Of a stretch of DNA of 64,000 nucleotides, positions 753 through 56,050 are shown one piece after another. Position 1 is the first letter of the stretch. The number at the start of each line of letters is the position of its first letter. The DNA is taken from the sequence record MN871447.1. The stretch is one strand, 5' to 3'. The translations under genes were made by a program, and so were the position numbers. The notes under the pieces were generated by a model. That model ran no database searches. It had not been told where the DNA came from and saw only the letters and a list, made by a program, of their open reading frames with translations.

Positions 753-820
753 TTTGAATTCCTTATTGGTTTAGTTAGCATAGTCCTTCGGTCAAACGAC
801 CGAAGGAAGTGTAAATAGGA

Positions 821-1210
821 TTAAGCGGCTTCAGCCATTTTGATACGAATTTCTGAAGGGAAATCGAAAGCAACTTCTTTCCCTGGGCGCAATGCTTCCT
901 GACGAGAAGCAACTTCGATGCGAACGTTTTTACGAATCTGAATACCAAAGCCCAGATCGGTTTTGTAACATTCGATGTCACGGTATTTATCGTTGGTGTT
1001 TTCAATGGCGTTCAGTAACAGCCATTTGATATCACCTTTACGGTCGAAGGCAATGTCTTGCAGCTGCGCATAAAGCGGGTAGTATTCGGTTTCGAAAAGA
1101 ATCTGTGCCGGAGTATCGACGAATTCAGTTTCGTGGTAAAGCGCTCTCAGTAAACCGGCGATGCGAGCAGCGGTGATAGCGAGGGTTTGTTTATCAGTGA
1201 AAGTGATCAT
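821..1210 (-). CDS. Hypothetical protein
   Basis: 129-aa ORF in a co-directional array, GGAG RBS. Confidence 0.75.
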   Translation of the reverse strand: MITFTDKQTLAITAARIAGLLRALYHETEFVDTPAQILFETEYYPLYAQLQDIAFDRKGDIKWLLLNAIENTNDKYRDIECYKTDLGFGIQIRKNVRIEVASRQEALRPGKEVAFDFPSEIRIKMAEAA

Positions 1211-1251
1211 TTTTGGATACTCCGGTAGAATTGTTGAGGTAAAAGAATGTC

Positions 1252-1572
1252 TTAGGAAATGTTTTTAACTAACCGTTTGAAGACGCCCGCATCGATAGTG
1301 AAGCAAACGATACTCGCGGGTTCGACGTAATGATTGGTCAGCGTGAAGATGTAGTCGTCGTAGGTTTGCAGTATCTTCAATGCCGCCTCGTAGACGCTAT
1401 GGTCTGCTTTACGAACTAATACAACGGTGTTGTACGAATCCCCGGGCAGGAGAAGGCGATCACCCAGCGCGTTGGCGTCATCGTGGGAAAAGATCAGCTC
1501 GATACTGCGGACGTCGTTTGATTCGATATCGTTCTCGAGAAAGACCACGGAGTTCATTTTTGAAAAGCGCAT
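1252..1572 (-). CDS. Hypothetical protein
   Basis: 106-aa ORF in array. Confidence 0.7.
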   Translation of the reverse strand: MRFSKMNSVVFLENDIESNDVRSIELIFSHDDANALGDRLLLPGDSYNTVVLVRKADHSVYEAALKILQTYDDYIFTLTNHYVEPASIVCFTIDAGVFKRLVKNIS

Positions 1573-1581
1573 GTTTAACCT

Positions 1582-2259
1582 CTATTGGTTGAAAACGGAA
1601 ATGAAGCGACTTACAACGCGAGTACGACCTTTACCCGGACCACGTTTAATTGGGCTCGACAGCGTGAGACGATATGCTTTTATTACATCGCCATCAAAAT
1701 CTACAAAGCCAGGGGCGCTAGGTCCTTTATTTGCATAAAGACCAATGACCGGACTACCAGAAATACCATAACCATTACTTGGCTCCGTAGAAAACATAGA
1801 GTGGTTGGTGGTTTGCTCCGAAAGTCGGAGTAATGCTGCGACATCTTTATCGTTGATTGTGTCAGCGTCTTCAAAAACAACGACTTTAGAATTATCGGGT
1901 GTGCCGTAGATATCTACCTGAGGAGTATCTTCGAGACGAACTACCTCAAACGGTTCTTCTGAAAGCGTAATAATTTCTTTCAATCCATCAATGATCGAAG
2001 ACGCCGCAATAAGGGTTAACTCTTCCCCAGATGGTGTTGAATCACGAATAGAACCTCGCGTTGTTGATACAGAAATTAGCATCCTTCTCACTGCGCTATT
2101 CATTATAAACACTTCGGTTAACGGTAGGTTGTAGAACACCTCTGCGCGCTGAATCAACTGGTAAGCAATTTCAATCCGGGAAATTTTCGTGTCCTTTACA
2201 GTGTCAAACCATGCCAGAATATCTTTAGCCGTTTCTACGGTTGTTTTTAAGTCAGTCAT
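1582..2259 (-). CDS. Hypothetical early protein
   Basis: 225-aa ORF, GAGG RBS, first gene after the promoter motif at 2318-2338. Confidence 0.8.
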   Translation of the reverse strand: MTDLKTTVETAKDILAWFDTVKDTKISRIEIAYQLIQRAEVFYNLPLTEVFIMNSAVRRMLISVSTTRGSIRDSTPSGEELTLIAASSIIDGLKEIITLSEEPFEVVRLEDTPQVDIYGTPDNSKVVVFEDADTINDKDVAALLRLSEQTTNHSMFSTEPSNGYGISGSPVIGLYANKGPSAPGFVDFDGDVIKAYRLTLSSPIKRGPGKGRTRVVSRFISVFNQ

Positions 2260-2317
2260 TTTCTTTTCCTCTAAGCTTAGTTATTCAGAAAGGTCTTTCC
2301 TTTCCTTCTTCACCTTG

Positions 2318-2338
2318 GCTATATATACATCAAAAAAA
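2318..2338 (-). promoter_or_regulatory. Putative early (virion RNAP) promoter
   Basis: Minus strand TTTTTTTGATGTATATATAGC; resembles the phiKZ early motif TATATTAC and recurs at other operon heads. Confidence 0.65.
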
Positions 2339-2399
2339 CTGCATTTCATTCTCTTAGAAAGTTTTTATGTTACCCATTCTAATTTTGAAGGACACTATT

Positions 2400-3653
2400 G
2401 TGGAAATCAAAAACCTTTTTGACGATCGTTTTAAGAACGTCGTTTACGATAGTCGCTTTGCCAGGGATGTCGCTGTTTTCACGAAGACCTTCGAAAACAA
2501 AGGCGAACATGCAAACTTCTTTGGTAGCGGTCTACTCGGTACCGTTAGGATTCGTTGGACAAACACTGAAACCAACGGGTTCTTTGATGACATTTTAAAA
2601 ATCGACCCCGATGACCTGAAAGCTGACATCGACGAACTGGATTGCATCGATCCAAGTCATATCGTGACTACGGACGCCTTTAACTTGATGATCGTCTACT
2701 GCGTCCATCGTGCGATGACCAGTGGTAAACTCTCAGCGGTACAACGAAAAGAAACCGCGATTAACCTGTTAAGAATTCTCCACTTTAAATTCATCTGCGG
2801 GATCATCACCCGTTACTTCCCGCATGGAACAGACGTACAGATCGCACTGCGAACGTATGAGGCCATGACTAACCGCTTCGACCTCAAGATCTACAAGACT
2901 TGGGGTAAACTCATTACGGCACGCGCCCAGTCAATTATTGAGCCTCACGGCATCCACGCGAAAACGATCCAGACCTTCACAGACGACGACGCTGTCAAGT
3001 ACATGCTCTCGGATATCCAGACCCGTATTCGAACCGTGATCAAAACGTTAACGGCGCTCTATTACCAGGTCAGAGAAAACGATGGTCGAGTTATCTCGGT
3101 CTCCAGTATGGTTGAGGTCGAGGGTAACCTCGAGCTGCGAGACGTTAAACGTGCCTTCCCGAAATACCGGCGTTACCTCTTTGAACAAATGACTGACCCG
3201 GCTAGTTTTATACGTTTGGAGTTAGTGGATATTCTGACAAAGAATGCCCCTTCGCAGAAAAAAGCGTTAATTGCCACGTTGCAATATACCAGCTTGCATG
3301 TCATTAACCCGGAAACGTTATTTAACACCAACCGTGGGAAAGAAGTTAAGCAGAGTAAAGAAACGCGTCAATTGGTTGAGTTTACGGAAAGAACGCTCGA
3401 ATATACTTTCGACTTTATTCACGGTAAGGGAATCAACCCACGCAACCTCGTCGAGTTAATCGGCAGCATCAAAGCGGTATTGAACGCCTCCCGTAACAAA
3501 GAACCGGAGGTCATGTACCTCAGAACCGAAGGCGATAAGATTGTGCGTGCAGCCACCGGTAAACGCGAACCTACGCCAGTCTCTGCGGAACGAACATCGT
3601 TTATCCTGTATTTGATCCTGCGTACCCTGACAATGAACTACTACCAAAATTAA
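2400..3653 (+). CDS. Jumbo-phage hypothetical protein on the late strand
   Basis: Track ORF 2367..3653; GAAGGA RBS points to an in-frame GTG at 2400; TATG at 2366-2369 upstream. Confidence 0.75.
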   Translation: MEIKNLFDDRFKNVVYDSRFARDVAVFTKTFENKGEHANFFGSGLLGTVRIRWTNTETNGFFDDILKIDPDDLKADIDELDCIDPSHIVTTDAFNLMIVYCVHRAMTSGKLSAVQRKETAINLLRILHFKFICGIITRYFPHGTDVQIALRTYEAMTNRFDLKIYKTWGKLITARAQSIIEPHGIHAKTIQTFTDDDAVKYMLSDIQTRIRTVIKTLTALYYQVRENDGRVISVSSMVEVEGNLELRDVKRAFPKYRRYLFEQMTDPASFIRLELVDILTKNAPSQKKALIATLQYTSLHVINPETLFNTNRGKEVKQSKETRQLVEFTERTLEYTFDFIHGKGINPRNLVELIGSIKAVLNASRNKEPEVMYLRTEGDKIVRAATGKREPTPVSAERTSFILYLILRTLTMNYYQN

Positions 3654-3660
3654 ACCAAAA

Positions 3661-3687
3661 AAAAGAGAGGGGTAACCCTCTCTTTTT
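3661..3687. terminator. Bidirectional intrinsic terminator
   Basis: AAAGAGAGGG-GTAA-CCCTCTCTTT with A and T tracts, between convergent genes. Confidence 0.85.
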
Positions 3688-3696
3688 ATATTTTCG

Positions 3697-4743
3697 TTAT
3701 AACCCGATTTGTTTCGCCAGTCGGCAATAACCACGATAGAACGCGTCGATCAGAAGATTCTCGAGAAGCGGAATGGAGGCGATACTCTGTCCAAAGACGT
3801 TGTAGTTCCAGGTGACGTGTTTGCGTACCGCACAGGTGTTCTCGGGTCGTGGGCCTTTCACCATATAGGCAATATCACCTACGCTGGAAGTTAATACCCA
3901 ACGCCCCTGATCTTCCCGGTATTCGACGTCCGTGATAAAGCGATCGGTTTTAAACTCTTCTTCGCTCAACGGTGAACCGATGATATCTTCCACTGCTTTT
4001 CGCATGTAAGAATCAATCAGCGGGATTTTCTCGACGTTTCCGTCGATATGGTAACCAAACCCCTTACCGAGTATTGACCCTACGTAGAAGCCTTCACAGG
4101 TGTCTTTATCGTTGGATCGATTAATGAGCTTTAGAACAAGGTCAGTTGTGCTGTCAAAGAACAGGGCAACGTTCGGGAGAAACTGGTATTCACCGCGGCG
4201 TTGACAAACCACTTTGTGCGCCCAGCTTAATTCGAAGTGTTCCCGCATGTACAGGATAAAATCTTCGCCCAGTTGTTTCTGCCAGGTACGGCCGTAAAAG
4301 TCACCGGTCCACGTACTCTTGTCGTCGGCCATGGTTCCGACTGCGATCGGGCGACCATTCATCAACAACGTCCGCTGCATGACATGAATTTTAAAACGAC
4401 AGTTGAGCATAAACCGTGCTCGCGCTTTCTGACCAATAAACCCTTGGAAAGCGTGTTGGATCGCCAGGAAACTAAACGGGCTTTTCGTTTCCTGAGTGAA
4501 ATGATACCGCGTAGTATCGCCGCCTTCGGTAACGAAGACAAGGTGTTTCATTTCTAAGGTAGGGTTAGTGCTAAACCGTAAAACAATATTGTCGTCCTTG
4601 TCCGTAAAGATAAATCCGTTTTCGTTACGATAACCAAAAAGACGATCCTTTTTACTGATCTCCAAAACTCCTTCGTAGTGAAAATCAGTCCCTGTTTTCT
4701 TATCGTAAACGGTACTGTAAACAAACGTTTCTATCGTTGCCAT
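3697..4743 (-). CDS. Hypothetical protein
   Basis: 348-aa ORF, AAGGAG RBS. Confidence 0.85.
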   Translation of the reverse strand: MATIETFVYSTVYDKKTGTDFHYEGVLEISKKDRLFGYRNENGFIFTDKDDNIVLRFSTNPTLEMKHLVFVTEGGDTTRYHFTQETKSPFSFLAIQHAFQGFIGQKARARFMLNCRFKIHVMQRTLLMNGRPIAVGTMADDKSTWTGDFYGRTWQKQLGEDFILYMREHFELSWAHKVVCQRRGEYQFLPNVALFFDSTTDLVLKLINRSNDKDTCEGFYVGSILGKGFGYHIDGNVEKIPLIDSYMRKAVEDIIGSPLSEEEFKTDRFITDVEYREDQGRWVLTSSVGDIAYMVKGPRPENTCAVRKHVTWNYNVFGQSIASIPLLENLLIDAFYRGYCRLAKQIGL

Positions 4744-4772
4744 GTCGTTCTCCTTTTAGTGTGGATAATAAA

Positions 4773-4802
4773 AAGAATGTCAGCAATAACGCCGACATTC
4801 TG
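4773..4802 (-). terminator. Terminator-like hairpin
   Basis: AGAATGTCGGC-GTTATT-GCTGACATTCT followed by TTTT on the minus strand. Confidence 0.65.
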
Positions 4803-4845
4803 TTGCGTATTTCAATAGAGTGATATATTCGTCTATTGTTTTCGA

Positions 4846-7020
4846 TTACCTATAGAAATTCGTCCCCATGTATTTTTGGAAGTCAGCGTGACGATTAGCG
4901 TTCATCTCCTCGATCTTACCTGCGACGTTAATCGGTTCCGCACCCGCCTCTTGTAAACACTCGTTAAGGTAATTGAGACGTCGTTCAAGCTTCATACTGA
5001 TAATTGGATTATCGGCATTTTCGATGGCTGACAATGTCTTTTCAATTTCACGGTGGAGGAAATCAATCTCTTCCTGCTGCTCGTCAATTTCCTGCGCATT
5101 CCCTGCCAACGCATCTACTGCCCCCGTCAATACCCTTCTGGAATCTAACCCGTAATAGTCTAAGTTCGACCCGTACAATAACAGATAGACGGTCAGAAGG
5201 TAGGCGATAACGGTATCGTCATGTCCACCCGGTGGATGGTCAATTCTTCCGTTCTTCTCGACCAACCCGGTCAATTCCGCAATGAGAATTTTATCATGAA
5301 GTCGTGTAGCCCCTTTCTGCATGGCGATCTTCAAAACGGTTTCGTAAAGCTGACGTCGGGTGGTGGTTCCCGTGCAGAAACCAAACTTCGTTTTACGACG
5401 AATATAGAATGCGTCATCACGACGGTTCATGTCACCCTGCAGCTCAAGGAACGCCGCGGTGTCCACTGACTTATTATCGACAATTAAGTTAAAGATTCGT
5501 TTGAACGGATCAATTCCCTTGCTGTGCAATATCAGACAGAGGTAATCAATAAACGTTTGTCCGGTGGATTTACGTTCTGGGATGAAGACAGCCTTAGGAT
5601 AAGAAATTAACAGATCACCTAAGAACTCAGCGTATTTAGGAATCAGTGCTTCGTTGATTACTGAAATCCCGATAACGTCCGCAGTATAAGGATCAAGGAA
5701 CACCAACGACAGCGCATCTCGTCCACCGCCTTCTGAGGTATCGGCCCCAATGACAAAGGTCATCGTCTTACGATTTGCATCCAGATATTCTTTGGAGACA
5801 TACCAGTGGACAATGTAACCGTTCCTGAAGATTTCGGAATAATCGGAATAACGCTGTGAGGCAATGGCTTTCGCTAACAGCTCTTTATCAATCGGGTTGT
5901 TCGTCCCTGCTGCGGTCCAGATGTTAAAGAAGTCACGGTCTGCTTCTGGGCCACGTGCCATAGCACGACGCATGTTCTCGTAATGCTGTTCGTCAGAGAC
6001 CCCAACCTGGTTGTGACTCCACGTTCCGTTGATTAAGAGTTTCGCATCAGAGGATTTCAGATTGCGCTGAACGATCTCACGAAGTTCTTCTTGACTCCCT
6101 GCGTCGTAAAAGTGCTCAGACCACCGAGCAGCTTCGTTCCACATTTTGAAAACAAAGCGACCATCACGAGACGTTTGGTCACCCGCGGTAGTGGTCATGA
6201 TACTGCCCCAGGGCATGTTTCTCGCTTTCGCTTTTTGAATCGCGGCGTTCATACCGGGCATTGCTGCTTTAAACGCAATTTCGATATAGTTGATGAAGGG
6301 GGTTTCATCCCAGCCTACCGTAGGCGAGGTGTTACCACGGCCGACCTTATTCGCACCACCTGGGTCAGAACGGGATACTGCTACCGCAAACAAGTTACCA
6401 CGGGTGTTATAGGTCACCTTCTCGTTAGCAATCGTGTCTGAACGGTCTGTTACTGTCAGATAAGGCGGCAAGTATTCACGGATACGACGTATCATCGTGG
6501 TTGTTTCAGAACGTAATTCGTCTGATTTGGTCACGAGTGAGATACGGGCCTTTGTATATCGCATATACAGCAGCCAGGAGTAAAGACAATAAGAGATAAG
6601 TGACTTACCAGTCTGACGGGGTTGTATCAACAGGTAATCGATATGGTTCATGTACGACCAGATCAAAGACATGTTCGCGCGGTTTGCCCTTAAAAGATCA
6701 CCTTCTTCACCGACAACCGGCGGAACGCGAAGACACTCTCTGAGATAATACCAGATGTTATATTCCGCTTCGATCTTAATTGCGATCATCTGTTCTTCAG
6801 TCAGATCGGGACTGAAAGGATCGACACCGACAAGGTCCGGGTTTAAAAGTGCAATCGGCCAGTGGTGGTTTTTAATTCCCATGTTTTGTAAGACACCGAC
6901 AAAACGTAGGAATTCTTTGTTTGGTGTATCCCAATCCGGGATAGCAGAGGGATGATAATCCCAATCGCTAAGGTGGAGAATAGGACGCGAGTCATTCTCT
7001 AGAATAATGGAGGAGGTCAT
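4846..7020 (-). CDS. terL: Terminase large subunit (phiKZ-type)
   Basis: Walker A QPRQTGKS, Walker B VGWDE, nuclease motifs IGADTSEG and GHDD; likely start is ATG 7020 after GAGGG (track start 7038). Confidence 0.93.
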   Translation of the reverse strand: MTSSIILENDSRPILHLSDWDYHPSAIPDWDTPNKEFLRFVGVLQNMGIKNHHWPIALLNPDLVGVDPFSPDLTEEQMIAIKIEAEYNIWYYLRECLRVPPVVGEEGDLLRANRANMSLIWSYMNHIDYLLIQPRQTGKSLISYCLYSWLLYMRYTKARISLVTKSDELRSETTTMIRRIREYLPPYLTVTDRSDTIANEKVTYNTRGNLFAVAVSRSDPGGANKVGRGNTSPTVGWDETPFINYIEIAFKAAMPGMNAAIQKAKARNMPWGSIMTTTAGDQTSRDGRFVFKMWNEAARWSEHFYDAGSQEELREIVQRNLKSSDAKLLINGTWSHNQVGVSDEQHYENMRRAMARGPEADRDFFNIWTAAGTNNPIDKELLAKAIASQRYSDYSEIFRNGYIVHWYVSKEYLDANRKTMTFVIGADTSEGGGRDALSLVFLDPYTADVIGISVINEALIPKYAEFLGDLLISYPKAVFIPERKSTGQTFIDYLCLILHSKGIDPFKRIFNLIVDNKSVDTAAFLELQGDMNRRDDAFYIRRKTKFGFCTGTTTRRQLYETVLKIAMQKGATRLHDKILIAELTGLVEKNGRIDHPPGGHDDTVIAYLLTVYLLLYGSNLDYYGLDSRRVLTGAVDALAGNAQEIDEQQEEIDFLHREIEKTLSAIENADNPIISMKLERRLNYLNECLQEAGAEPINVAGKIEEMNANRHADFQKYMGTNFYR

Positions 7021-7097: not shown

Positions 7098-7111
7098 AAG
7101 GGTTTGTACTT

Positions 7112-19785: not shown

Positions 19786-20208
19786 TTAGCTCCGTGTGAA
19801 AATGTCTACCCCAAAGAATCCTGGGGCGTCTTTGTAACTGTCACCCAACTTCCAATAGTCATTGAAGGCGCGGCGTTTAAGGGTTATCACCCCTTCGTAT
19901 TCGATCAAGGTTTTATCCGTAATGGCGATATCAGCTTTGATCCCTTTATCGGTCAGTCTGAAATTACCGATGAAGTGAGAAGGCGTCACGATCTTTCTAA
20001 AACGTGCGAAGAATTCGTTAGTATTTTCCCAAGCGAGTTTAGTTAATTGAGGATTAAGTTCACCCTCAAGAACTTGTCTGGTTTTAAACGCCCTTGATAA
20101 CCGTTCGATATCGGCAGCGCGCAGGTAGTTCGGTAAGGGGAGATAAATATTAACTAGTTTACTAACATTAGCCGGTTTAAACACGTTGAATACCCTTTCA
20201 TGAAACAA
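19786..20208 (-). CDS. Hypothetical protein, possible degenerate prohead-protease-like fold
   Basis: GEL..P..., SHFIGNF, LKRRAF, GVDIF pattern. Confidence 0.5.
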   Translation of the reverse strand: MFHERVFNVFKPANVSKLVNIYLPLPNYLRAADIERLSRAFKTRQVLEGELNPQLTKLAWENTNEFFARFRKIVTPSHFIGNFRLTDKGIKADIAITDKTLIEYEGVITLKRRAFNDYWKLGDSYKDAPGFFGVDIFTRS

Positions 20209-21382: not shown

Positions 21383-21688
21383 TTAAAGTGGTTGGTAGTC
21401 AGCATCATCAAATTTGTCGTGCCACGTGCGGCGGTTCTTGCCGGACACGCGATGGCGGTTACGATGACGTTTGTGTTTTTCTTTTTGTCTTTCCGTTGGT
21501 TCACCGTAGAAAAGAACATCGTTAACAGCAGGTTCTTCGTTAACAATTTCTTCAGTACCACAAACTGCTTCGGTCGTTACCTCTTCGGTAACGACGTCAG
21601 CGGCTGTATTTTGAGTACGCGAAGTAAAGAGGTAACCAATTACAAAAGAGACAATGAAAATAACAATGAAAAGTAGCGCCGTAAACAT
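21383..21688 (-). CDS. Membrane-anchored protein with acidic then basic tail
   Basis: N-terminal TM; EEVTTE..EEIVNEE then KEKHKRHRNRHR. Confidence 0.75.
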   Translation of the reverse strand: MFTALLFIVIFIVSFVIGYLFTSRTQNTAADVVTEEVTTEAVCGTEEIVNEEPAVNDVLFYGEPTERQKEKHKRHRNRHRVSGKNRRTWHDKFDDADYQPL

Positions 21689-21717
21689 AGATACACCTTT
21701 TGGTTAAGAAGATAGCC

Positions 21718-22317
21718 TCACGAGAGGACATGTCCCATCTCGTCGAGTCCTGTTTCTTTATACGTATTAAATTTTTCAGTACGGTCTTTAGTGCAATATT
21801 TTCCTTCTCTCCTTAAATTATTACGTTCGTTACGTTTAGCCATAAGGAGTTCGCGGAAGGCCAAGAGACTAAAGTTAGAAACAATAATACTGAGATTAAC
21901 TAGTAGAATGCTCGCGGAGATAATTATTCCCACAGGGTGTCTGTTAGTAATACAAGTCAAAAGACCAATTATACTTGTACCAGTAGTTATTGATAAAATA
22001 AAACCGTATTTTTTCAAAATGCGAGTGACGAACGATTTAGTGAGTATTGTACGAAAGAATTTAATGTCCGAACTGGTCATCTTACTCCGATGTTTTAACA
22101 GACATTTAGACCATACTCGTAACTTGTAAGTGATGAATTCCGCCCATTCTTCGTTGGAGCAGTCTTGATTTATTTTATCAAAAAAATCAATGACTTCTCT
22201 TACTTGACCGACCACGTTTAAAACTTTACTAAGTTGAGCAATGCCAGATTCCCACATTTTACGCTCTTCGCTTTTATTTTTATTATTTTTCGAACCATTT
22301 TCTTTTTTAGAAGTCAT
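21718..22317 (-). CDS. AT-rich two-TM membrane protein
   Basis: 199 aa, two hydrophobic segments, AAGGA RBS. Confidence 0.7.
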   Translation of the reverse strand: MTSKKENGSKNNKNKSEERKMWESGIAQLSKVLNVVGQVREVIDFFDKINQDCSNEEWAEFITYKLRVWSKCLLKHRSKMTSSDIKFFRTILTKSFVTRILKKYGFILSITTGTSIIGLLTCITNRHPVGIIISASILLVNLSIIVSNFSLLAFRELLMAKRNERNNLRREGKYCTKDRTEKFNTYKETGLDEMGHVLS

Positions 22318-22335
22318 TTTTATTTCCTTTATAAA

Positions 22336-22623
22336 TTAATTATTTTTTTTTGATGTATTCAAACTACCATAAAACATCAAACCGATGATTCCGGTAAGGA
22401 TAGTTAAAGTTAACAGTTCGATGTTGAAAATAACTGCCCCAATAATAGAGAGGATGAAAATGGCTGAAATGACAGCATAAAGTACTTTAGTATCTTTATT
22501 ACTCTTACCTTTTTCTTCTTCGGTTTTTGCATTCTTGATGGCCAATTTGTTCATTCCAATGGCCGTCCAAAGAACAAAACTTATAACGAAGGTTAATGCA
22601 ATAATGATGATGGAAGTTAACAT
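22336..22623 (-). CDS. Three-TM membrane protein
   Basis: 95 aa, strongly hydrophobic, AAGGA RBS. Confidence 0.75.
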   Translation of the reverse strand: MLTSIIIIALTFVISFVLWTAIGMNKLAIKNAKTEEEKGKSNKDTKVLYAVISAIFILSIIGAVIFNIELLTLTILTGIIGLMFYGSLNTSKKNN

Positions 22624-23630: not shown

Positions 23631-23789
23631 TTAGGATAAATAGGTAACGGAGACTAACAGAGCGAACGGCGAAACAATATACCAGACGAGCACAGAGACG
23701 AACCCGTAAAGGATGGCCATCGGTAACGATACGCCGAAACAAAGCAATGCAATGAGAGTGACAATTAATAAAAGTATACTTTCTTTCAT
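23631..23789 (-). CDS. 52-aa hydrophobic peptide (not in track)
   Basis: MKESILLLIVTLIALLCFGVSLPMAILYGFVSVLVWYIVSPFALLVSVTYLS; GAGG RBS; first gene after a promoter. Confidence 0.75.
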   Translation of the reverse strand: MKESILLLIVTLIALLCFGVSLPMAILYGFVSVLVWYIVSPFALLVSVTYLS

Positions 23790-23853
23790 TTTACTTTACC
23801 TCTTATTGGTTTAGTTATTTGGAAAAGACTTTTTCCTTTCCTATTTCACCTTA

Positions 23854-23874
23854 GCAATATATACATCAAAAAAA
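23854..23874 (-). promoter_or_regulatory. Putative early promoter
   Basis: Minus strand TTTTTTTGATGTATATATTGC; nearly identical to 2318-2338. Confidence 0.7.
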
Positions 23875-26306: not shown

Positions 26307-26717
26307 TTATTTACGGCGACGTTGATGGTTGTTGTTGAATTTGTTGGCGAGGGTATTAAATGATTCCTTTGAGATTTTATTTTCTTTCAAGGAGCTGATC
26401 TCGACGACATTGCGTTTATCGTTGCAAGGCCATAAAGACTCAATCAATTCTGCGGTGTCGTCTTTTTCAAGACCACGATAAATCTCTTCTAGTATATAGT
26501 AGTCGCAGAAGGCCGCCGCATCTAAAATGAGATTTGACATTTTAGCCCCTTTGAAAGGATACAGCTGACTAGCAACTAATTCGCCGTCTAAAATGTAAAG
26601 CGCCACCGAAATTTTTGGTGTGGTATAAATAGCTTTGACTTTAATCTCTTTAACAGTATAAGAATTTTTATTAATAGCTTTTTGTACGTTTTCGATAGTT
26701 TTCGCAGTCAGTAACAT
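26307..26717 (-). CDS. Hypothetical early protein
   Basis: Track 26307..26726; ATG 26717 after GGAG and an AACTAAAC box. Confidence 0.7.
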   Translation of the reverse strand: MLLTAKTIENVQKAINKNSYTVKEIKVKAIYTTPKISVALYILDGELVASQLYPFKGAKMSNLILDAAAFCDYYILEEIYRGLEKDDTAELIESLWPCNDKRNVVEISSLKENKISKESFNTLANKFNNNHQRRRK

Positions 26718-26784
26718 TAATAGCACTCCAATAGGTTTAGTTATTTTATTTACGGAAAGGTTTTATCTTTCCTAAATCACTGTA

Positions 26785-26806
26785 GCTATATAGATGTTAA
26801 AAAAAT
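26785..26806 (-). promoter_or_regulatory. Putative early promoter
   Basis: Minus strand TTTTTTTAACATCTATATAGC-TACA-GTGA. Confidence 0.6.
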
Positions 26807-28987: not shown

Positions 28988-29483
28988 TATCGGCCCCTTT
29001 CAGATACCCCGTTAAACGATCAACGTGCGGTTGTACCCACTCTATCGAATCGAACTCGTCGATGTGTTCGGCCACGTAACGGATTTTCTCCGGGATAGGC
29101 TGTTTAAAGTGCTCGAGGAAGAGTTTAGCGAAACTGCACCCCAGGGCATCGATCTCCAGATACCCGTCGATGAGCTCTTCAACGGTTACTTCATTCGCCC
29201 GATCTGCGCTATATTGAGAAAGGAGTTTCTCCAACTCAATACCGTGGGGATTAGCCGTGTCGATAATAACGTCGGAGAGGCTTACAAAAGCATGGTTCCC
29301 GCAATCGTAAAAGATCACCTCATGTCCCCACTGCTTCGCTACCAAACCAATACATACTGCCGCCGTCCCGCAATCCCCGGAGTTAATCCGTTTAATCGCA
29401 TCTTCTTTCGATTCACGGGAAAAATAGACCCGGTAAAAATCAACAAACTTATCAACAAGATTCAGGATTGATTCGGTAGGCAT
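28977..29483 (-). CDS. Putative transglutaminase/papain-like Cys-His-Asp protein
   Basis: GDCGTAA, NHAFV, IIDT in the expected order; likely ATG 29483 after AAGGAG. Confidence 0.5.
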   Translation of the reverse strand: MPTESILNLVDKFVDFYRVYFSRESKEDAIKRINSGDCGTAAVCIGLVAKQWGHEVIFYDCGNHAFVSLSDVIIDTANPHGIELEKLLSQYSADRANEVTVEELIDGYLEIDALGCSFAKLFLEHFKQPIPEKIRYVAEHIDEFDSIEWVQPHVDRLTGYLKGADNEQ

Positions 29484-30156
29484 TTTCAAACTCCTTGCGG
29501 TTGTTATCATCTAAGAAAAATTCCATGGCATCACGGTACCGGTGCCAGCATTGCGTATCACGGAAATGATAGATTTTATCAAGCTCAGTAATACGGTCAG
29601 TGACAAGTTTGTGAAGATGTGCGTAGTAACGTCCTTTCGGAAGAAACTGCGTAAAGATATCTTTTTCCGTGAGCCAAATTTTAAGGAAGGTGACTTCTAT
29701 CCCTTCAACGTCTTTTAGGTTGTCGAGGATATCTGCCAATTTCACCGCCCACGCGTCAGGGTTAGCGGAGTTAAGGAGTTTAGTCGCCTCTAACATCGTT
29801 CGGTCTTTCCGGTTCGCTTGTATGGCTTTAGTTGTGTAGCGATCCGTAACCCAATCAACGAGTTTCAGTGTCTCATCAACCAGTTGGGTGTAATTACCGT
29901 CTATGCTATCAAACGTAAACAGCATAAAACGGAGATCCTCTAAAGAGATCTCGGTATCCTCAACCACGTCATGTAACAGACCTGCGCAGACTACGGTGAT
30001 AGGGTAGTCATTTTCCTTGAGCGTTTCACTGACGGAAAACGGATGGATGTAATAAGGTTTGTTAGACCCTTTTCTTTTTTGCCCGGTGGCAGAATGCGTT
30101 GACATCGCCACCAAATTACAAACAGAATATAATTTTCTTTCCGCTTCAGTTTTCAA
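29452..30156 (-). CDS. HD-domain RelA/SpoT-type hydrolase (Mesh1/SAH-like)
   Basis: H..GQKRK...PYYIHP, AGLLHDVVEDT, VKLADILDN. Confidence 0.85.
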   Translation of the reverse strand: MKTEAERKLYSVCNLVAMSTHSATGQKRKGSNKPYYIHPFSVSETLKENDYPITVVCAGLLHDVVEDTEISLEDLRFMLFTFDSIDGNYTQLVDETLKLVDWVTDRYTTKAIQANRKDRTMLEATKLLNSANPDAWAVKLADILDNLKDVEGIEVTFLKIWLTEKDIFTQFLPKGRYYAHLHKLVTDRITELDKIYHFRDTQCWHRYRDAMEFFLDDNNRKEFENAYRINPESC

Positions 30157-30188
30157 TCCTAAGGCCCTCTAGGTAAGCTTTCAATAAA

Positions 30189-30212
30189 GTGATATAGTCT
30201 TCAAATAAATTC
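30189..30212 (-). promoter_or_regulatory. Putative early promoter, second subtype
   Basis: Minus strand AATTTATTTGAAGACTATATCACTTTATTG; matches the 38939 site. Confidence 0.6.
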
Positions 30213-30938: not shown

Positions 30939-32168
30939 TTACGCTGGATCAGCGTTAGCGGATGTAAACGTTTGATCGATGACGGCGACTTTCTCCTTAG
31001 GGTGTTTGATCTTAAACCGCCTACGCATCTGATAAAGGTAATTCTCATCATCACCGACGTATTTTACCTCATAGCCTACCCGATCAAAATAGGTGATCTC
31101 GTCAGGTTTATCCGACTCCTTGACTAACGACACCACTACTTTATCATTAAAACGCTTAGAGGTAACTTCGACCCAAGATTGGAATTTTTGCGACGGGAAC
31201 ATAGGTTTTGTGAAATTAATCACGAAACGCGCCCCTCTAAACCAAACGAGTTCATCTCCAGCCAATTTCGCGTCCAGTGGAATCATTGCGATCAGTCGGG
31301 TCAAAGGTGCCACTAGTGTACGGGGGAGAGTTTCACCACGGAACATTCCACCGATAGGGACATTTTCGTTACCGTTTTCGTAATCGTCTGTCCAATAAAC
31401 GTTATCTAAACTCATGAGCGCTCTTTTACGGGTCTTGTGATCAAAGGTACCCATCAGCTTAATAAACCGAGTAAAAAGCGCACTGAGTGCTTCCTGTTGG
31501 CCTTTATGAATAAAGAATGATTCAAGATTGATATAGTCACCGTTAATAAACCCCGCGGCTTGTGTAACAGCACGGGTGTCGGAAATTGCGGCGGCGTGTT
31601 CAGGGGATATTTCTAACGCACCATCACGATCGGCATAAAAGTGTTTCTCGATATCATCGGGCTGGACCCACGGGAAGGTCACTTCTACCGACGAATAAAA
31701 ATTGTGGTAACCAATAAAGTCACTGCTGTAGGAAGAAGGAGTGTAGAAAATTCTACCGTCTAAAAAACGCGCAATTCCGTCATCGTCCATGAAGACGGCG
31801 CTACAACGTTTGTTCTGTTTGGAGCCATAGCTGTGTTCGGCCCATTCGTCCTCTTCACCTGTCAGTGGTGTTAATGGACGATAGCTCACCAGGGTAATGA
31901 ATTGCCCCAGTAGCTGATCACGTTTAGCGCCATCAAGAGTGGGGTTCTCAAACAACAAGCGACTGAAACCGGAAAGTAATGAACTGTTATCGTCGATAGG
32001 AGTCAGCGATTTTCGCCAGGCTTTGAGGGAACCGATTAAAATCCCGGCACTGCCACCGGAGTGCCCTTGATCATGCCAGATATCAAACGCTGCACGTAAA
32101 ATGGAACGACTTTCTTCATCGAGCTTAGCGAATTCAAATTCCGCTTCGAAGTGGGACTGTAAATTCAT
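30939..32168 (-). CDS. Phage hypothetical protein
   Basis: QGHSGGSA and PLTPLTGEEDEW...QNKRC motifs that recur in phage proteins. Confidence 0.75.
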   Translation of the reverse strand: MNLQSHFEAEFEFAKLDEESRSILRAAFDIWHDQGHSGGSAGILIGSLKAWRKSLTPIDDNSSLLSGFSRLLFENPTLDGAKRDQLLGQFITLVSYRPLTPLTGEEDEWAEHSYGSKQNKRCSAVFMDDDGIARFLDGRIFYTPSSYSSDFIGYHNFYSSVEVTFPWVQPDDIEKHFYADRDGALEISPEHAAAISDTRAVTQAAGFINGDYINLESFFIHKGQQEALSALFTRFIKLMGTFDHKTRKRALMSLDNVYWTDDYENGNENVPIGGMFRGETLPRTLVAPLTRLIAMIPLDAKLAGDELVWFRGARFVINFTKPMFPSQKFQSWVEVTSKRFNDKVVVSLVKESDKPDEITYFDRVGYEVKYVGDDENYLYQMRRRFKIKHPKEKVAVIDQTFTSANADPA

Positions 32169-32351
32169 CTTTATTTCCTTAGCTTATTTTCGATTAGTTG
32201 ATTGTATAAAGCGTATTCTCTGTGCGTTTTAATAACGACTTTCTTCTTATTATCAGACTAAAGGCGAAGTGCGTAAAAAGATCTCTGAGTAAAGTATATC
32301 TTATGTTACGAACGCCCGTATTATCACCCTTTGCAAAGGTTATGACCCAAA

Positions 32352-38893: not shown

Positions 38894-38938
38894 TGTTTAA
38901 TCACCTTATTTTTTGTTAATGATGTTAACTGCAATAGG

Positions 38939-38962
38939 GTGATATAGTTTTCAAACTAATTG
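38939..38962 (-). promoter_or_regulatory. Putative early promoter, second subtype
   Basis: Minus strand AATTAGTTTGAAAACTATATCACCCTATTG. Confidence 0.6.
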
Positions 38963-44426: not shown

Positions 44427-44894
44427 TTATTTCTTTAAAATGTCACTACCGTTAAAGTAGAGTCTCAGTCCAGCGAGACCGAGTTTCTCTACGGCTTCAT
44501 CAACGCCCACCGCCAGTCTTTCAATGACGGTATGTTCCCTACCGCGTAAGAACATAGGCTCGAAGTCATCACTGAAGACACCGTCCAGATGAATCAACAT
44601 CCAAATCTCACCGGTCTCTTTCATACAGACTTCCGACTTACCCAGGTCATTGATGCGCTCAAGACCCAGATCACGTAATATCAGGATAGCTGAACCGCAT
44701 TCATCGCCGAGAATCCAATTATCTTCATCGAAATTTTCTAACTCTTCAAGCAGAACCCCGGCATGATGAAGGACGATATCGTTAACGGCATTGACCATTG
44801 CCGCCGCAGCGTCACGGAATTTCTGTTCGCGTTCTTCACGGCTGTATTTCAGATTAGCAAAAACGCTTAAAGCAGTAGATTTTAAAAATGACAT
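44427..44894 (-). CDS. Hypothetical protein
   Basis: Track start 45101 overlaps the upstream gene; ATG 44894 has a GAGG RBS and an AACTAAAC box. Confidence 0.75.
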   Translation of the reverse strand: MSFLKSTALSVFANLKYSREEREQKFRDAAAAMVNAVNDIVLHHAGVLLEELENFDEDNWILGDECGSAILILRDLGLERINDLGKSEVCMKETGEIWMLIHLDGVFSDDFEPMFLRGREHTVIERLAVGVDEAVEKLGLAGLRLYFNGSDILKK

Positions 44895-44961
44895 TTGACT
44901 TTCCTCTATAAGTTTAGTTGTATAAATGGCAGAGGAACTCCTCTGCCAGGTAAGTGCTTGA

Positions 44962-45594
44962 TTAGTTAAAGAACGGCGCCATGTTCGCACTGAATTTAAT
45001 ATCTTCAGCGTGTTTGAATTTGATCGTTGTAACAGTGATCGGTTCATAGTCGGCCATGTTAACAATCGACAATGTTTTATCGAGGTAGATAACGTTGTCA
45101 CGAATGATCATGTGATAATGCTCACGTTCCCCGCTTTGTGTTTTAGCTACTTCGTCAATGAAGATATCCGTTTCCGGATTATAACTGAAGTCGCTCGGCA
45201 TAACTTTCACAGGGTTCTGTTCGCGATAACGCTTAACATTAAGGATAACCTCTTCTACTCCGTAGACGATAGAAAGAATGTCCATGTCTTCTTCGAAGTC
45301 TGCGAGTTCATCAGGGGTAAGAATCGTGCTGTCGAGGTATTCGCGTTTGTACGGCCAGTTGGCCAGGAATTCTGGCTCGTCGCACATCGTGGAAAACGCC
45401 TCTCCGTTTTCGCGGTACAGCCAAAAACGATCACCTGTACTCATACGAGTTTCCACGATTAAATCTGCCGTTTCCGGGATAGAATTTTCAAAATCGAAGC
45501 GCGGCGTGAATGTGGCGAAATTCTCGGACAGGGTGTCTGGTGTTAAATCGAAGTTAGCGTCTTTAGCGAAAACAGTAATAGCGAAAGTAGTCAT
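44962..45594 (-). CDS. Acidic early protein
   Basis: 210 aa; first gene after the promoter at 45661; AAGG RBS plus AACTAAAC box. Confidence 0.8.
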   Translation of the reverse strand: MTTFAITVFAKDANFDLTPDTLSENFATFTPRFDFENSIPETADLIVETRMSTGDRFWLYRENGEAFSTMCDEPEFLANWPYKREYLDSTILTPDELADFEEDMDILSIVYGVEEVILNVKRYREQNPVKVMPSDFSYNPETDIFIDEVAKTQSGEREHYHMIIRDNVIYLDKTLSIVNMADYEPITVTTIKFKHAEDIKFSANMAPFFN

Positions 45595-45660
45595 GATATA
45601 TTCCTTATTTGTTTAGTTAAAAGTATGATAAAAGGGTTATTCTTTTCTTTTATCACTCGG

Positions 45661-45681
45661 GCAATATATACATGAAAAAAA
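45661..45681 (-). promoter_or_regulatory. Putative early promoter
   Basis: Minus strand TTTTTTTCATGTATATATTGC-CCGA-GTGA. Confidence 0.7.
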
Positions 45682-50513: not shown

Positions 50514-50568
50514 GATGTTTCTCCTCTGTTTAAAATATAAGTAAGGGGTATTTATACCCCTTACCGTT

Positions 50569-51316: not shown

Positions 51317-51325
51317 TGGATCACC

Positions 51326-51523
51326 TTACTCAATAAATGCAACGAAGATACAGGCTAAGGCGAGCGTACCTGCAGTGAGCGCAGCGTAGACTCCTAACTC
51401 AGGAATGGTTCCACCCACCCCACAAGAGATTAAAGCCAAAAAGCCCATAACTACTATTGCTAATAATCGGAATTTTATTTCTGTTTGCACTTTAATTGGA
51501 CCCTTTTGATTTCCAATTACCAA
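51326..51523 (-). CDS. Two-TM membrane protein
   Basis: 65 aa, hydrophobic hairpin. Confidence 0.65.
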   Translation of the reverse strand: MVIGNQKGPIKVQTEIKFRLLAIVVMGFLALISCGVGGTIPELGVYAALTAGTLALACIFVAFIE

Positions 51524-51555
51524 TTCCTTGGATGGGTTCCATAGCGACCTTCTTG

Positions 51556-52458: not shown

Positions 52459-53037
52459 TTAAACTCCTTTATTGTTCAACAGGGCTATTTCCATAACGTT
52501 GTTAATTCTATTCCTTTCCGCCAAAGCGACAGCTTGCTTCACGTCATTTAACGCCACCAGAGAAATAAGACCGTCTACATTGAAAAGAATGGCCTCCGCA
52601 TTTCTCGGGCCCGTAAATGATTCAAGAAGAGACGGATTTTTCTTCGGCCGCAGGGTCAGTAGCTTTTCTTCCGCTGCGCTTTTAACTTCGGGGGCGTAAG
52701 AATACCCCATTTCTTCCAACGCGCTAAAATACTCTTTCAATTCATTAATATTGAAAATTGGAAGGATCGTATTGTTAGAAGGGATAAAATGTAGGCGTTT
52801 GTAGAACGCCGTTGTTTTTTCGATCAAGGTAAAACGCGGAACTATTTTATCTTGACTCAACAGGATTTCAAAAAACTCTTCTTCTAAACGAGAATAGATT
52901 TTATCAGGTTCAGAAGCTTTAGCGTAAATAACGGTAGTCTTCCCATTGCGACAATTATCGGCGCAGGTTGCTACGTTATTAACAATGTAAATTTCGCCTT
53001 TATAATGCTTATATACCTGCCCGATAGATATGGTCAT
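52459..53037 (-). CDS. DUF1653-domain protein
   Basis: GQVYKHYKGEIYIV...VIY...YSR..EEF...PRF at the N-terminus. Confidence 0.7.
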   Translation of the reverse strand: MTISIGQVYKHYKGEIYIVNNVATCADNCRNGKTTVIYAKASEPDKIYSRLEEEFFEILLSQDKIVPRFTLIEKTTAFYKRLHFIPSNNTILPIFNINELKEYFSALEEMGYSYAPEVKSAAEEKLLTLRPKKNPSLLESFTGPRNAEAILFNVDGLISLVALNDVKQAVALAERNRINNVMEIALLNNKGV

Positions 53038-53399
53038 TTCCCCGCCTTAAATTCATTAATTTCGATTCCGTAAACTTCGCAACTGATTTCGTTGTATGCT
53101 ACGGCCGCATTGACAGTGAAGCTATTACTATTCCTGTCCATTGCCAATAATCCCAGTGGCAACACTTTAACGTGTTCTTTCACCCTGACACCACCCTGGT
53201 AATAGGCTCCTACCGGTTCGAGAGGACCCGTTACCTCTACCCATTTGTGGTAGGCAAGGTTTTCCACAGAACCCCCGTTAAGAAGTTTCTCTGAGAAATA
53301 TTCACCCATCACAGATTTGAGATGGCCACGGCAATCGACAGCGACCGCATTAAGAGAAACACCCGCCAGTAAAACTGCTAAAATCATCTTTTTCATGTT
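53034..53399 (-). CDS. Exported hypothetical protein
   Basis: Likely start MKKMILAVLLAGVSLNAVA (signal peptide); track start 53420. Confidence 0.7.
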   Translation of the reverse strand, partial: NMKKMILAVLLAGVSLNAVAVDCRGHLKSVMGEYFSEKLLNGGSVENLAYHKWVEVTGPLEPVGAYYQGGVRVKEHVKVLPLGLLAMDRNSNSFTVNAAVAYNEISCEVYGIEINEFKAGK

Positions 53400-53401
53400 T
53401 G

Positions 53402-54043
53402 TTACTCCCAAAACTCCCAATTAATTCCTTTACAAATTTCTTCGATGGTTTCTTTATAAGTTTCACCTAGTGGTCTACGAGAAGAATCGAAGGAAAAAGA
53501 TCCTTCTTCGTTAAAATGATATCGTCGGTCTTCGTCTGTATCAAAATAAAGAACAACTCCGTCTTTAACGAAACGACGTTCTTCAAGACCATCACGCGGG
53601 TAAAGAAATTCACGCCAGCTCGGTTCACGAACGTAACCTTTCCGGGCTGCTAAATGATCAAGTGAAATTTCAGTAACTCTCCATTGTATTTCTGGTCGAG
53701 GGTCACTGTACCCCAAATCGACGAAGAACTGAATGAAGTCGGATACGGCGATATTTGGAATTATACCTTTGAATATCGCCGATTGGAAGAGGATATTTCC
53801 ATCTTTGATTTCTACCGTCAGATCACTCGGTGTAAATATTTGAGTGTTATTTTCGACTTTTAAGTGCGCGAAAATACGAAACGCAAATGAACCTGTTACA
53901 TTCTCTTCGTTGATAGATAAGAATTCTAACAGTTTAGAAATGTACTTCCCTTTCGTTAAACGATTGAATTCGAATGCCAAAGAAAGATTTCCTTCGACCA
54001 ATTCAAAGCGCACCTCTTCCCACTTTAAATTAAACTTACCCAT
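53402..54043 (-). CDS. Hypothetical protein
   Basis: 213-aa ORF, GGAG RBS. Confidence 0.75.
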   Translation of the reverse strand: MGKFNLKWEEVRFELVEGNLSLAFEFNRLTKGKYISKLLEFLSINEENVTGSFAFRIFAHLKVENNTQIFTPSDLTVEIKDGNILFQSAIFKGIIPNIAVSDFIQFFVDLGYSDPRPEIQWRVTEISLDHLAARKGYVREPSWREFLYPRDGLEERRFVKDGVVLYFDTDEDRRYHFNEEGSFSFDSSRRPLGETYKETIEEICKGINWEFWE

Positions 54044-54070
54044 TTGATTTACTCCAATTCATCTAAAAAG

Positions 54071-54093
54071 AAAAGGGCGGAAACCGCCCTTTA
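54071..54093 (-). terminator. Intrinsic terminator
   Basis: AAAGGGCGG-AAA-CCGCCCTTT with a T-tract on the minus strand. Confidence 0.8.
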
Positions 54094-54096
54094 TCG

Positions 54097-55647
54097 TTAC
54101 TGACCAATAGCCTGGTTCAGTTTCTCAATCACCAGCCCCAACGCCGCCTGCGCGTCAATCTGCGCGTCAATGGCTTTCTGCGCTTCGGCGAAACGCACGA
54201 CGATTTCATCACGTAACGGTTTGATAGCAGCAATCAACGCCTCGTTACGCTCTTTCTGTTCCAGCTCAATCGCAACGCGTTCGAGTTCCAGAATCTGTTT
54301 ACGGACGTCAGTGGATGTTGTAGGTGCCATAGTTTGCTCTTTAAACTCGATCGGTGTGATAGGGTCTGGTACAGAGTTGGCCATTTCAGGGAGTGTTGCT
54401 AAGTTCACCTGTCTAGCCTCTAAATGCGCCAACCGGTTAGGGTATTTCGAAGCATTAGTTTCCACCGTAGATTCCCCTTCTTTCGGTCCTTTTTGTAACG
54501 CTTCCATCACCGCCACCGCCATTGCAGTTGGTGCTTCAGTTTTCGTCCGATGAACAATCCCTACCGCATCCCCTTCTTCATTGAGTTTAATCCAGTTAAC
54601 GTGACAGCCCGGTTTGTTAGGGTGATCATCGCTGTAGATGGAGACGATACCCTTTTCTACTAACGGGTTCAAAATGGCGAAACGTGTTTCTTTACTCAGT
54701 TCCGGCAAGTTAGGGAGATAGTTCCAGACCTGGTAGATCGGAAGTAAACTCTTAGACGCCTTCAGTAATTCTACGATCATGCCCCTGATCGCGTCTTTAT
54801 TTAAAGGGAATTCCGAAGAAGTAGGTACCGTCATGTCCGTATTTTGGTAGACAGACGAACGATGGTCGCTTCCGCTTGTCTGAGTATCATCCAACGCCAG
54901 TGTTGAAGCCGAGTGGTCGAAAGATAGCTCAGACGCAGGGAGAGGTTTGGAGAAGTCAGGGTGAACAAAACGCCCTACCGGATACTTATATTTCTCCGGC
55001 TGCCATTCTTTCTCTACTACGCCTTCGTAGGTTTTCAGGTAGGAAAGAACTTGTTGACGAGGCGCCCCTTTCAGGTAGCGATACTCTTTGACCGACTCAT
55101 CAATTTCAGTACGAGTAAAGCCTTTCGGGTCAGTGAGGAGAAAGGCTTTGATTTTATCGGCCGCGTTAATCAGTTTTACATCGACCAGGTGTTCGGCGCG
55201 GAGAGATTCAAAATCAACGACAGCTTTGGTTGTAACCGGTTTTTCTTGGGTGGTCATTTCTTTCTCCTCTTTGATAGGCGGGATAATGCGTTCCAGACGA
55301 CTGCGTTTCTTAGTGACAATGGTCTGTTTACCTGCGCCGGTGATATGAACCACCGAACCAGACGGACGTTCTTTCTCTGGCTGTGCGAGGACGTTAATCG
55401 GCGCCGTAAACATTTTGTGGCGAAGCAGCGGTGCACACTTGACGCCTTTTTGCGTTATCTCTGTTACGACGATTCTGTTTTTCTCAATGACGTACTTGAG
55501 TAAGATATCCAGTTCTTTCTTCTTCAGTGAGCGTAGAGAAGGAATTTTAGACTGGAGCAGGTCATAGGTCATTCCTTCAGGTAAACGCTCCAGAAAGCGA
55601 CTCAGTTCTTCATACGGCAGATATAAGTTTTCTTGTAAACGGATCAT
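54097..55647 (-). CDS. Multi-domain protein: putative winged-helix repeats plus C-terminal coiled coil
   Basis: 516 aa; three ~60-aa helical repeats separated by low-complexity linkers; AAGGAG RBS plus AACTAAAC box. Confidence 0.7.
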   Translation of the reverse strand: MIRLQENLYLPYEELSRFLERLPEGMTYDLLQSKIPSLRSLKKKELDILLKYVIEKNRIVVTEITQKGVKCAPLLRHKMFTAPINVLAQPEKERPSGSVVHITGAGKQTIVTKKRSRLERIIPPIKEEKEMTTQEKPVTTKAVVDFESLRAEHLVDVKLINAADKIKAFLLTDPKGFTRTEIDESVKEYRYLKGAPRQQVLSYLKTYEGVVEKEWQPEKYKYPVGRFVHPDFSKPLPASELSFDHSASTLALDDTQTSGSDHRSSVYQNTDMTVPTSSEFPLNKDAIRGMIVELLKASKSLLPIYQVWNYLPNLPELSKETRFAILNPLVEKGIVSIYSDDHPNKPGCHVNWIKLNEEGDAVGIVHRTKTEAPTAMAVAVMEALQKGPKEGESTVETNASKYPNRLAHLEARQVNLATLPEMANSVPDPITPIEFKEQTMAPTTSTDVRKQILELERVAIELEQKERNEALIAAIKPLRDEIVVRFAEAQKAIDAQIDAQAALGLVIEKLNQAIGQ

Positions 55648-55678
55648 TGTATTTCTCCTTCTTCTTTTACTGGTTTAG

Positions 55679-56050
55679 TTATTTGACTAACATTTGTAAT
55701 GAGGCAATAACCGCTTTCAGTTCCTCATTATTGAGAACAAGGTAGGTCGAGTCTTTTTCAAATAAGCCATCGCGGCTCGTTGCGAAAAGATCCATGGGAA
55801 TATCAGAGGAAATGTCACACGTTTTCATTTCCCCCTGGATGAAATCATTGAGTTCATCTCGTTCTTCTGAGGATCTGACTTCAATGTCAATTAAAGGTCT
55901 AAACACAAAGTCATCGCGTAGCGATTCGTATTTAACATTTAGAGCTAGATAACCCGGCTCTAGTTGCCCCTCCGTCCAATCCACCGGTCCAAATACAAAA
56001 AGTGTCCCGGAAGGCAATTTAAGAAATTCTTCTTTAGAATAAAGTTTCAT
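55679..56050 (-). CDS. Phage hypothetical early protein
   Basis: ATG 56050 after AGGAG; EEFLKLPSGTLF motif. Confidence 0.75.
   Translation of the reverse strand: MKLYSKEEFLKLPSGTLFVFGPVDWTEGQLEPGYLALNVKYESLRDDFVFRPLIDIEVRSSEERDELNDFIQGEMKTCDISSDIPMDLFATSRDGLFEKDSTYLVLNNEELKAVIASLQMLVK

Follow-up and report, generated by a model that had tools for sequence, protein, structure and literature searches.

The DNA analysed here (hereafter the window, 64,000 nucleotides (nt) in length) is identical to bases 1-64000 of MN871447.1, the genome of Serratia phage KpLz_1_41, a phiKZ-like jumbo phage of 305,006 bp whose isolation host is Klebsiella pneumoniae. Our subject is an eight-nucleotide word, AACTAAAC (hereafter the box), which recurs just upstream of the Shine-Dalgarno (SD) sequences of a small number of early genes. 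The genome carries fragments of the β and β' subunits of multisubunit RNA polymerase (RNAP); KpLz_1_41 encodes its own multisubunit RNA polymerases and is probably a nucleus-forming phage. Its close relatives, which include Klebsiella phage KpLz-2_45 of the genus Siatvirus, are 96-99% identical to it over a 10-kb test stretch and, across the whole window, 93-99% identical where the sequences align. The nearest phage outside this group is Serratia phage Moabite, with 56% amino acid (aa) identity in an RNAP β subunit, followed by phiKZ-like phages with approximately 28%.

The whole genome contains 12 exact copies of the box. Seven of these precede an SD sequence and an ATG at a distance of 16-25 nt, all in sense orientation and none antisense; six lie in the window and the seventh at genome position 247,574. 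An earlier note on this DNA had listed the six window copies, and we recovered all of them on the minus strand at the positions it gave, together with the gaps that it had estimated at 16-19 nt (25 nt in one case). The box at 769-776 is located 16 nt 5' of the ATG of the ORFan gene 387-752 (ORFan: an open reading frame (ORF) of unassigned function), inside an early operon and without a promoter of its own. The copies at 23809-23816 and 26735-26742 both end 19 nt 5' of their ATG and belong to a 52-aa ORF (23631-23789) and to gene 26307-26717, respectively. The box at 44912-44919 stands 17 nt before gene 44427-44894, the second cistron of an early unit, and the one at 45611-45618 is found 16 nt before gene 44962-45594. 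Finally, the box at 55673-55680, which has no hairpin, lies 25 nt from the ATG of gene 54097-55647. The description of every copy as intergenic holds for five of the six: the first bases of the 55673-55680 box overlap the TAA stop codon (55679-55681) of the upstream ORF 55679-56050, in a junction of 31 nt. Likewise, the minus strand is not a feature of the box itself but mirrors gene orientation, as 288 of the 326 genes (~88%) in our own rough gene call for the whole genome are on that strand.

Both variants reported in the earlier note are real. The first, AACTAAGC at 2275-2282 (minus strand), lies 15 nt 5' of the ATG of gene 1582-2259; the second, the weak variant AACTAATC at 32192-32199 (minus strand), lies 23 nt 5' of the ATG of gene 30939-32168 and is a doubtful member of the family, with one substitution in the related phage LPKP23. 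The scan by eye behind the note had missed two exact copies in coding sequence, one at 4470-4477 on the plus strand, antisense within gene 3697-4743, and one at 20037-20044 on the minus strand within gene 19786-20184. Neither is followed by a start codon, and we place both outside the family.

The box was said to sit immediately 5' of the SD, and an SD-like word (AAGGA, GAGG or GGAG) is indeed present between box and ATG at all six exact copies. Usually three bases follow the box, and then an extended SD (TAAGGA, TAGAGGA or TAAGAGG) begins. Counting exact and variant window sites together, five of the eight have the start of the SD core 6-7 nt after the box, and the other three have it 4, 14, and 15 nt after. 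At six of the eight sites a stem-loop without a U tract ends 4-11 nt 5' of the box. The one at 785-806 (minus strand; 9-bp, GC-rich, -14.9 kcal/mol, no U tract) is separated from the 769-776 box by 8 nt, and this spacer contains a TATG 2 nt 5' of the box. Another 9-bp stem-loop (44927-44948, minus strand, -16.2 kcal/mol) is located 7 nt 5' of the 44912 box; in two relatives, an A-U pair of its stem is replaced by G-C, a compensatory change, and a third relative carries this change plus a mispair. Folding of the leaders predicted a mean unpaired probability for the box of 0.8-0.9 at six of 11 sites, compared to 0.5-0.55 for the surrounding RNA, suggesting that the box RNA would be mostly single-stranded. 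By eye, the pattern does not fit the (A-R-N)n motif of Hfq or the motifs of CsrA.

Listing of the intergenic regions revealed an early-promoter-like family, TATAT(C/T)AC-N3-A-N-TG, with 26 copies in the genome, all on the minus strand and zero on the plus strand. The motif often follows a T-rich stretch, and many copies are directly followed by a 5' stem-loop. It resembles the phiKZ early motif, has TATATTAC as its equivalent in Moabite, and is presumably the promoter of the virion RNA polymerase (vRNAP). Within the window, early-promoter-like motifs lie on the minus strand at 2311-2325, 4813-4827, 23847-23861, 26778-26792, 30182-30196, 38932-38946, and 45654-45668. All pre-SD boxes are found within early transcription units. 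The earlier note remarked that only part of the copies follow an early promoter; in agreement with this, five of the 11 boxes or variants sit 43-62 nt downstream of such a motif and the remainder at internal junctions of the same units, the exact copies at 769, 44912, 55673, and genome 247574 being located at internal cistron junctions.

One promoter subclass, T7-N4-6-TATAT(A/T)GC..GTGA, occurs four times, and each copy is followed by a stem-loop, a box, and an SD. The four boxes in question are parts of a cassette of approximately 70 nt that has been duplicated; its elements are, in order, an early-promoter variant, a stem-loop, the box, and an SD. All four cassettes lie on the minus strand. 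For the 2275 box, the cassette elements (2287-2338) are a T-run with a TATATAGC..GTGA early-promoter variant (2310-2338) and a GGAAAG/CTTTCT stem-loop (2287-2306). Those of the 23809 box (23821-23874) are an early-promoter variant at 23846-23874 and a stem-loop at 23821-23841, and those of the 26735 box (26754-26805) an early-promoter variant at 26777-26805 and a GGAAAG/CTTTCC stem-loop at 26754-26772. The 45611 box follows an early-promoter variant (45653-45681) and a weak A/U stem-loop (45627-45654; together 45627-45681). Three of the four cassette stem-loops have GGAAAG/CTTTCC arms in common, and the promoter parts of the 2287-2338 and 23821-23874 cassettes share 92% identity along 52 nt.

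About eight early genes of unassigned function carry the box. Their proteins are mutually unrelated; paralogy of the downstream genes, considered as a source of the repeats, was rejected, as none was found. No PHROG or Pfam family was assigned to the box-downstream proteins, with the exception of two that are encoded behind variant sites: a Tad3-domain protein whose gene follows the weak variant at 32192, and one with a weak match to a PHROG of unknown function behind a variant at genome position 94,751. Early ORFans that serve host takeover typically have such a profile. A search for related loci with the 210-aa protein returned one near-identical genome only. The Tad3-domain protein (30939-32168, minus strand, 409 aa) matches Pfam Tad3, a Type I Thoeris inhibitor, with its N-terminus (E = 1.7e-24), and its gene is a candidate anti-defence gene in the early region.

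In the window, AACTAAAC has eight copies versus 3.5 expected, and this number was reached in none of 100 shuffles. The positional bias that the earlier note anticipated also holds genome-wide: seven of the 12 copies fall, in sense orientation, into the zone 10-30 nt before a start codon, which covers only ~1.3% of positions. Excluding SD words, the early-promoter word TATATCAC, and T-runs, the box ranks first among the 8-mers of this zone. The wider core of the word is clearer than the exact 8-mer. In the zone from -33 to -13, AACTA precedes 21 genes versus 4.0 expected, ACTAA 23 versus 4.1, and TAACT 25 versus 5.7, and these three show the top fold enrichments of all non-SD pentamers. The box is the longest and most repeated form of this wider pre-SD word, (T)AACTAA. 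Stop codons of upstream genes, i.e., the TAA in TAACTAA, were rejected as the cause, since they overlap only two of 22 core-word sites and the box spans two reading frames only. Small upstream ORFs ending in the box were likewise rejected on inspection by eye, as they are inconsistent across sites.

We compared KpLz_1_41 with three relatives, KpLz-2_45, LPKP23, and an IMG/VR genome. The exact boxes are unchanged in all three, and at the site of the 2275 variant LPKP23 has AACTAAAC. The breaks between high-scoring segment pairs (1741, 21602, 27738, 39349, 51279, 54793, 59400, and similar ones) never coincide with a box. A wastewater metagenome contig matches gene 44962-45594, diverges at 45606, and keeps AACTAAAC in a different upstream context. 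The sequence before its box resembles the stem-loop arm at 23821-23841, and the contig may reflect a swap between paralogous cassettes; as this is one contig, the retention of the box is suggestive. The wastewater runs are labelled "RNA-Seq" and consist of contigs that probably derive from DNA; they show no transcript ends. Among the runs searched there was no RNA-seq of an infection.

Beyond these relatives, the word is present without being used in the same way. Moabite has 15 copies, none of which is a pre-SD box. Totoro has 16, slightly more than a control in which the word was read backwards; two of them precede an SD, where they probably overlap the stop of the gene upstream. The Klebsiella jumbo phage KpGz_1 has fewer copies than the backwards-read control. 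Among the phages compared, the box is thus specific to the genus of KpLz_1_41, and the term "phage-specific" used in the earlier note was well chosen. In Moabite, the leading pre-SD word is AATTAA(CC), found before 21 genes; AATTAA is the top permutation of its composition and occupies the equivalent place, including in early leaders after a stem-loop. Moabite and KpLz_1_41 have the early word TATATTAC and the late word TCCTATG in common, and it is the leader word that differs between the genera. A literature search for the word returned only papers on coronavirus transcription-regulating sequences, a potexvirus, and rice transposable elements; we regard these as coincidences of letters without bearing on a DNA phage.

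The comparison of relatives also revealed that approximately 1 kb of the window (21602-22614) has no counterpart in KpLz-2_45, LPKP23, or the IMG/VR genome and forms a variable island within the early ORFan region. Two genes of the early region are auxiliary metabolism genes: 56195-57976 (minus strand) encodes a nicotinamide phosphoribosyltransferase homologue (PHROG 448, E = 1e-162), and 29452-30156 (minus strand) is annotated in relatives as a GTP pyrophosphokinase or metal-dependent phosphohydrolase.

The earlier note had offered three options for the box: a translational enhancer, a site for RNA binding or processing, or the core of a middle promoter. The anatomy of the leaders leans toward an RNA-level, ribosome-site-adjacent signal, while the promoter core rests on a loose motif likeness and on the layout of hairpin followed by box. 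We tentatively favour, with a probability of about 0.4, a cis-acting element that works at the RNA level next to the ribosome-binding site, as a translation enhancer or standby element. On a subset of early ORFan mRNAs, (T)AACTAA would sit single-stranded, usually 3 nt 5' of an extended SD (TAAGGA or GAGGA), and provide an unstructured segment for landing or enhancement, rich in A and lacking G, often with a stable stem-loop on its 5' side. It would help the host 30S subunit to load at these ribosome sites, probably through protein S1, a role that can be likened to that of the T7 gene-10 leader word TTAACTTTA, which occupies an equivalent position; four copies have spread within the duplicated cassette. 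We infer the action on RNA and the effect on ribosome loading from how closely the box is tied to the SD, from its occurrence in very short early leaders and at internal junctions, from its exclusively sense orientation and predicted accessibility, and from the weaker variants, which form a graded set.

Several observations weigh against this reading. Enhancers of the S1 or standby type need no exact 8-mer, and seven identical copies suggest a sequence-specific reader. E. coli rrsH 16S rRNA, used as a stand-in for Klebsiella, contains no 8/8 complement to the box (the best match is 7/8 at nt 954-961), and 16S rRNA pairing was rejected as the mechanism on this ground. The absence of the box from Moabite, the nearest other genus, means that it is no universal of the host ribosome. 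Third-order Markov resampling of the upstream windows yielded some 8-mer with at least seven hits in 14% of trials; because of this result, and because copies that share a cassette are not independent, the exact 8-mer alone is only moderately significant. Finally, the box varies at two of 88 columns across the four genomes, which are ~93-99% identical, and the flanks vary at 3-5%. The box is hence not kept more than its flanks, and since the flanks themselves vary so little, the comparison has no power and box conservation proves nothing.

The last three of these observations would equally be expected if the box had no function of its own and reflected duplication of the cassette, the A-rich and G-poor composition in front of ribosome sites, and a few chance matches. 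Three or four copies do lie in one cassette, with the near-identical promoter parts upstream of 2282 and 23816 described above. We nevertheless consider this explanation unlikely. Outside the cassette, the upstream DNA of the copies has the box alone in common, and the four exact copies at 769, 44912, 55673, and genome 247574 share no other sequence with the rest, giving at least five to six independent contexts. The orientation of seven to zero, the concentration of copies in ~1.3% of the genome, and the top ranks of AACTA and ACTAA among non-SD pentamers of the pre-SD zone also speak against it.

The identity of the copies could instead indicate that a phage protein recognizes the box. An RNA-binding protein or endoribonuclease acting in the manner of T4 RegA/RegB would use it as an operator or cleavage site, marking a small early ORFan regulon for timed repression, stabilization, or processing. 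Both systems involve a signal adjacent to the ribosome site and limited to early messages. RegB cuts GGAG itself, and RegA sites overlap the AUG. The recurrence of an exact 8-mer in seven unrelated gene contexts is consistent with such a role, as are its confinement to early units and to one genus and its predicted single-stranded state beside a stem-loop at six of the eight window sites. A precedent is the chimallivirus RNA-binding protein ChmC, whose binding sites on phage mRNAs are close to start codons, although ChmC showed no sequence motif and peaks 3' of the start codon (PMC11077065). The KpLz_1_41 regulon would differ from that of T4 in having no RegA or RegB homologue, since the 305-kb genome gave no match to RegA (PF01818) or RegB (PF10715) at E <= 1, and no candidate reader protein was identified. 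The graded weak variants, which include TAACTAG and AACTAAAG and are fused to the SD, fit a context effect better than a strict operator, and we consider a role as operator or cleavage site unlikely. We think it quite unlikely that the box is a tag, read by a phage protein, that defines a post-transcriptional regulon of early host-takeover or anti-defence ORFan mRNAs. Such tag reading, if true, could time translation or pass vRNAP-made early transcripts to host ribosomes; a cis motif for a factor of this kind is unreported for chimalliviruses, given that ChmC showed none.

A different type of explanation places the box at the DNA level. Candidate late promoters of the phiKZ-like kind in KpLz_1_41 consist of a stem-loop, often without a U tract, followed within a few nt by TATG, 21-35 nt before an ATG. 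Examples are found ~35 nt 5' of the terminase start at 7020 (minus strand) and 5' of the plus-strand genes 2400, 23931, and 45735, and TTTTATG is enriched upstream of genes (eight of 25 genome copies). As the late promoters of this phage look TATG-type, the box is distinct from a late promoter; among the box sites examined, TATG was found near the box at 769 only. The box could still be the core of an internal, middle-class promoter of the non-virion RNA polymerase (nvRNAP), which would restart transcription 5' of the ribosome site after a stem-loop acting as terminator or attenuator. The order of stem-loop, 4-11 nt, and box parallels that of the TATG promoters, and the distance from box to ATG (15-25 nt) is similar to that from TATG to ATG (21-35 nt). 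Genes with both an early and a middle promoter are known, e.g., PHIKZ054 (PMC8244752), and terminators in 5' untranslated regions (UTRs) end most early transcripts of phiKZ (PMC10914365), providing precedents for both parts of the arrangement.

The promoters of related jumbo-phage polymerases resemble the box loosely, being short A-rich words with an AAC/ACT core, but they differ in spacing and sequence. The phiKZ middle promoter consists of an A-rich run and TACT ~22 nt 5' of the start site, with 5' UTRs of ~31-40 nt (PMC8244752). The box context aaaTAACT resembles this motif, yet it lies 24-34 nt from the ATG, and the phiKZ geometry, with the motif centred at -22, would place the transcription start on the ATG or within a few nt of it, removing the strong SDs. 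The late promoter of the AR9 nvRNAP, AACA-N6-T-A/G(+1), is recognized on a uracil-containing template strand (PMC7598289). The box reads AACT-N7-TA, deviating from this consensus in both spacing and fourth base, and the TA in question begins the extended SD TAAGGA; the box also has no counterpart to the phiKZ late TATG overlapping the start site. Moreover, early UTRs at genome 180514 and 304977 measure only ~41-44 nt from motif to ATG and carry AACTAAAG or TAACTAG fused to the SD, and therefore offer no space for a second promoter. Taking into account that the 55673 copy shares bases with a stop codon in a junction of 31 nt, that there are only ~8-11 sites per 305 kb, and that TATG already accounts for the late promoters, we regard a promoter function of the box as improbable.

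Apart from the early promoter and a late signal of four bases, TATG, little is understood of the signals that govern gene expression in phiKZ-like jumbo phages, and reviews state that middle and late signals are not predictable from sequence. An orientation-specific word on a few early ORFan messages is a concrete handle on such signals and flags early ORFans that are possibly co-regulated. If the box is an enhancer, the engineering of Klebsiella phages could make use of it; alternatively, it may be the binding site of a phage regulator or represent a missing promoter class, and if it is a mere context effect of the ribosome site, the finding is an ordinary one. The box is a real, genus-specific leader word of modest scope whose function is unproven; most likely it gives a new sequence form to an ordinary kind of signal, namely an enhancer or a context of the ribosome site.

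Two known systems come closest to the RNA-level, ribosome-site-adjacent enhancer that we favour and to the cassette in which part of the copies reside. In T4-type phages, PeSL cassettes are repeats of an early promoter and a stem-loop that flank ORFans (PMC2839356, PMC4122927). The four composites of early promoter and stem-loop in the KpLz_1_41 window likewise precede ORFans in a variable early region. They differ in that the promoter serves the phage virion RNAP rather than sigma-70 and in that the order of elements is promoter, stem-loop, box, SD, with the box also occurring without the cassette. The breakpoints among the four genomes miss the cassettes, and one metagenome contig (45606) hints at a swap; a PeSL-like role in gene shuffling is not supported beyond the cassette architecture.

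Like the box, the T7 gene-10 epsilon element is short, rich in A and U, and free of G, and it directly precedes the SD of a phage mRNA. Its full sequence, UUAACUUUA, is not matched by the box, which reads (U)AACUAAAC and differs in its 3' half (AAAC versus TTA). A complementarity to 16S rRNA nt 458-466 has been proposed for epsilon; the box does not match this region, its best match of 7/8 in E. coli rrsH lying elsewhere. What the two elements have in common is the UAACU core, three KpLz_1_41 sites reading TTAACTAA, and the location. The T7-derived enhancer TTAACTTTA combines a UAACU core with a place just 5' of the SD (PMC10011478), and in the KpLz_1_41 window the SD core begins 4-7 nt after the box at six of the eight sites.

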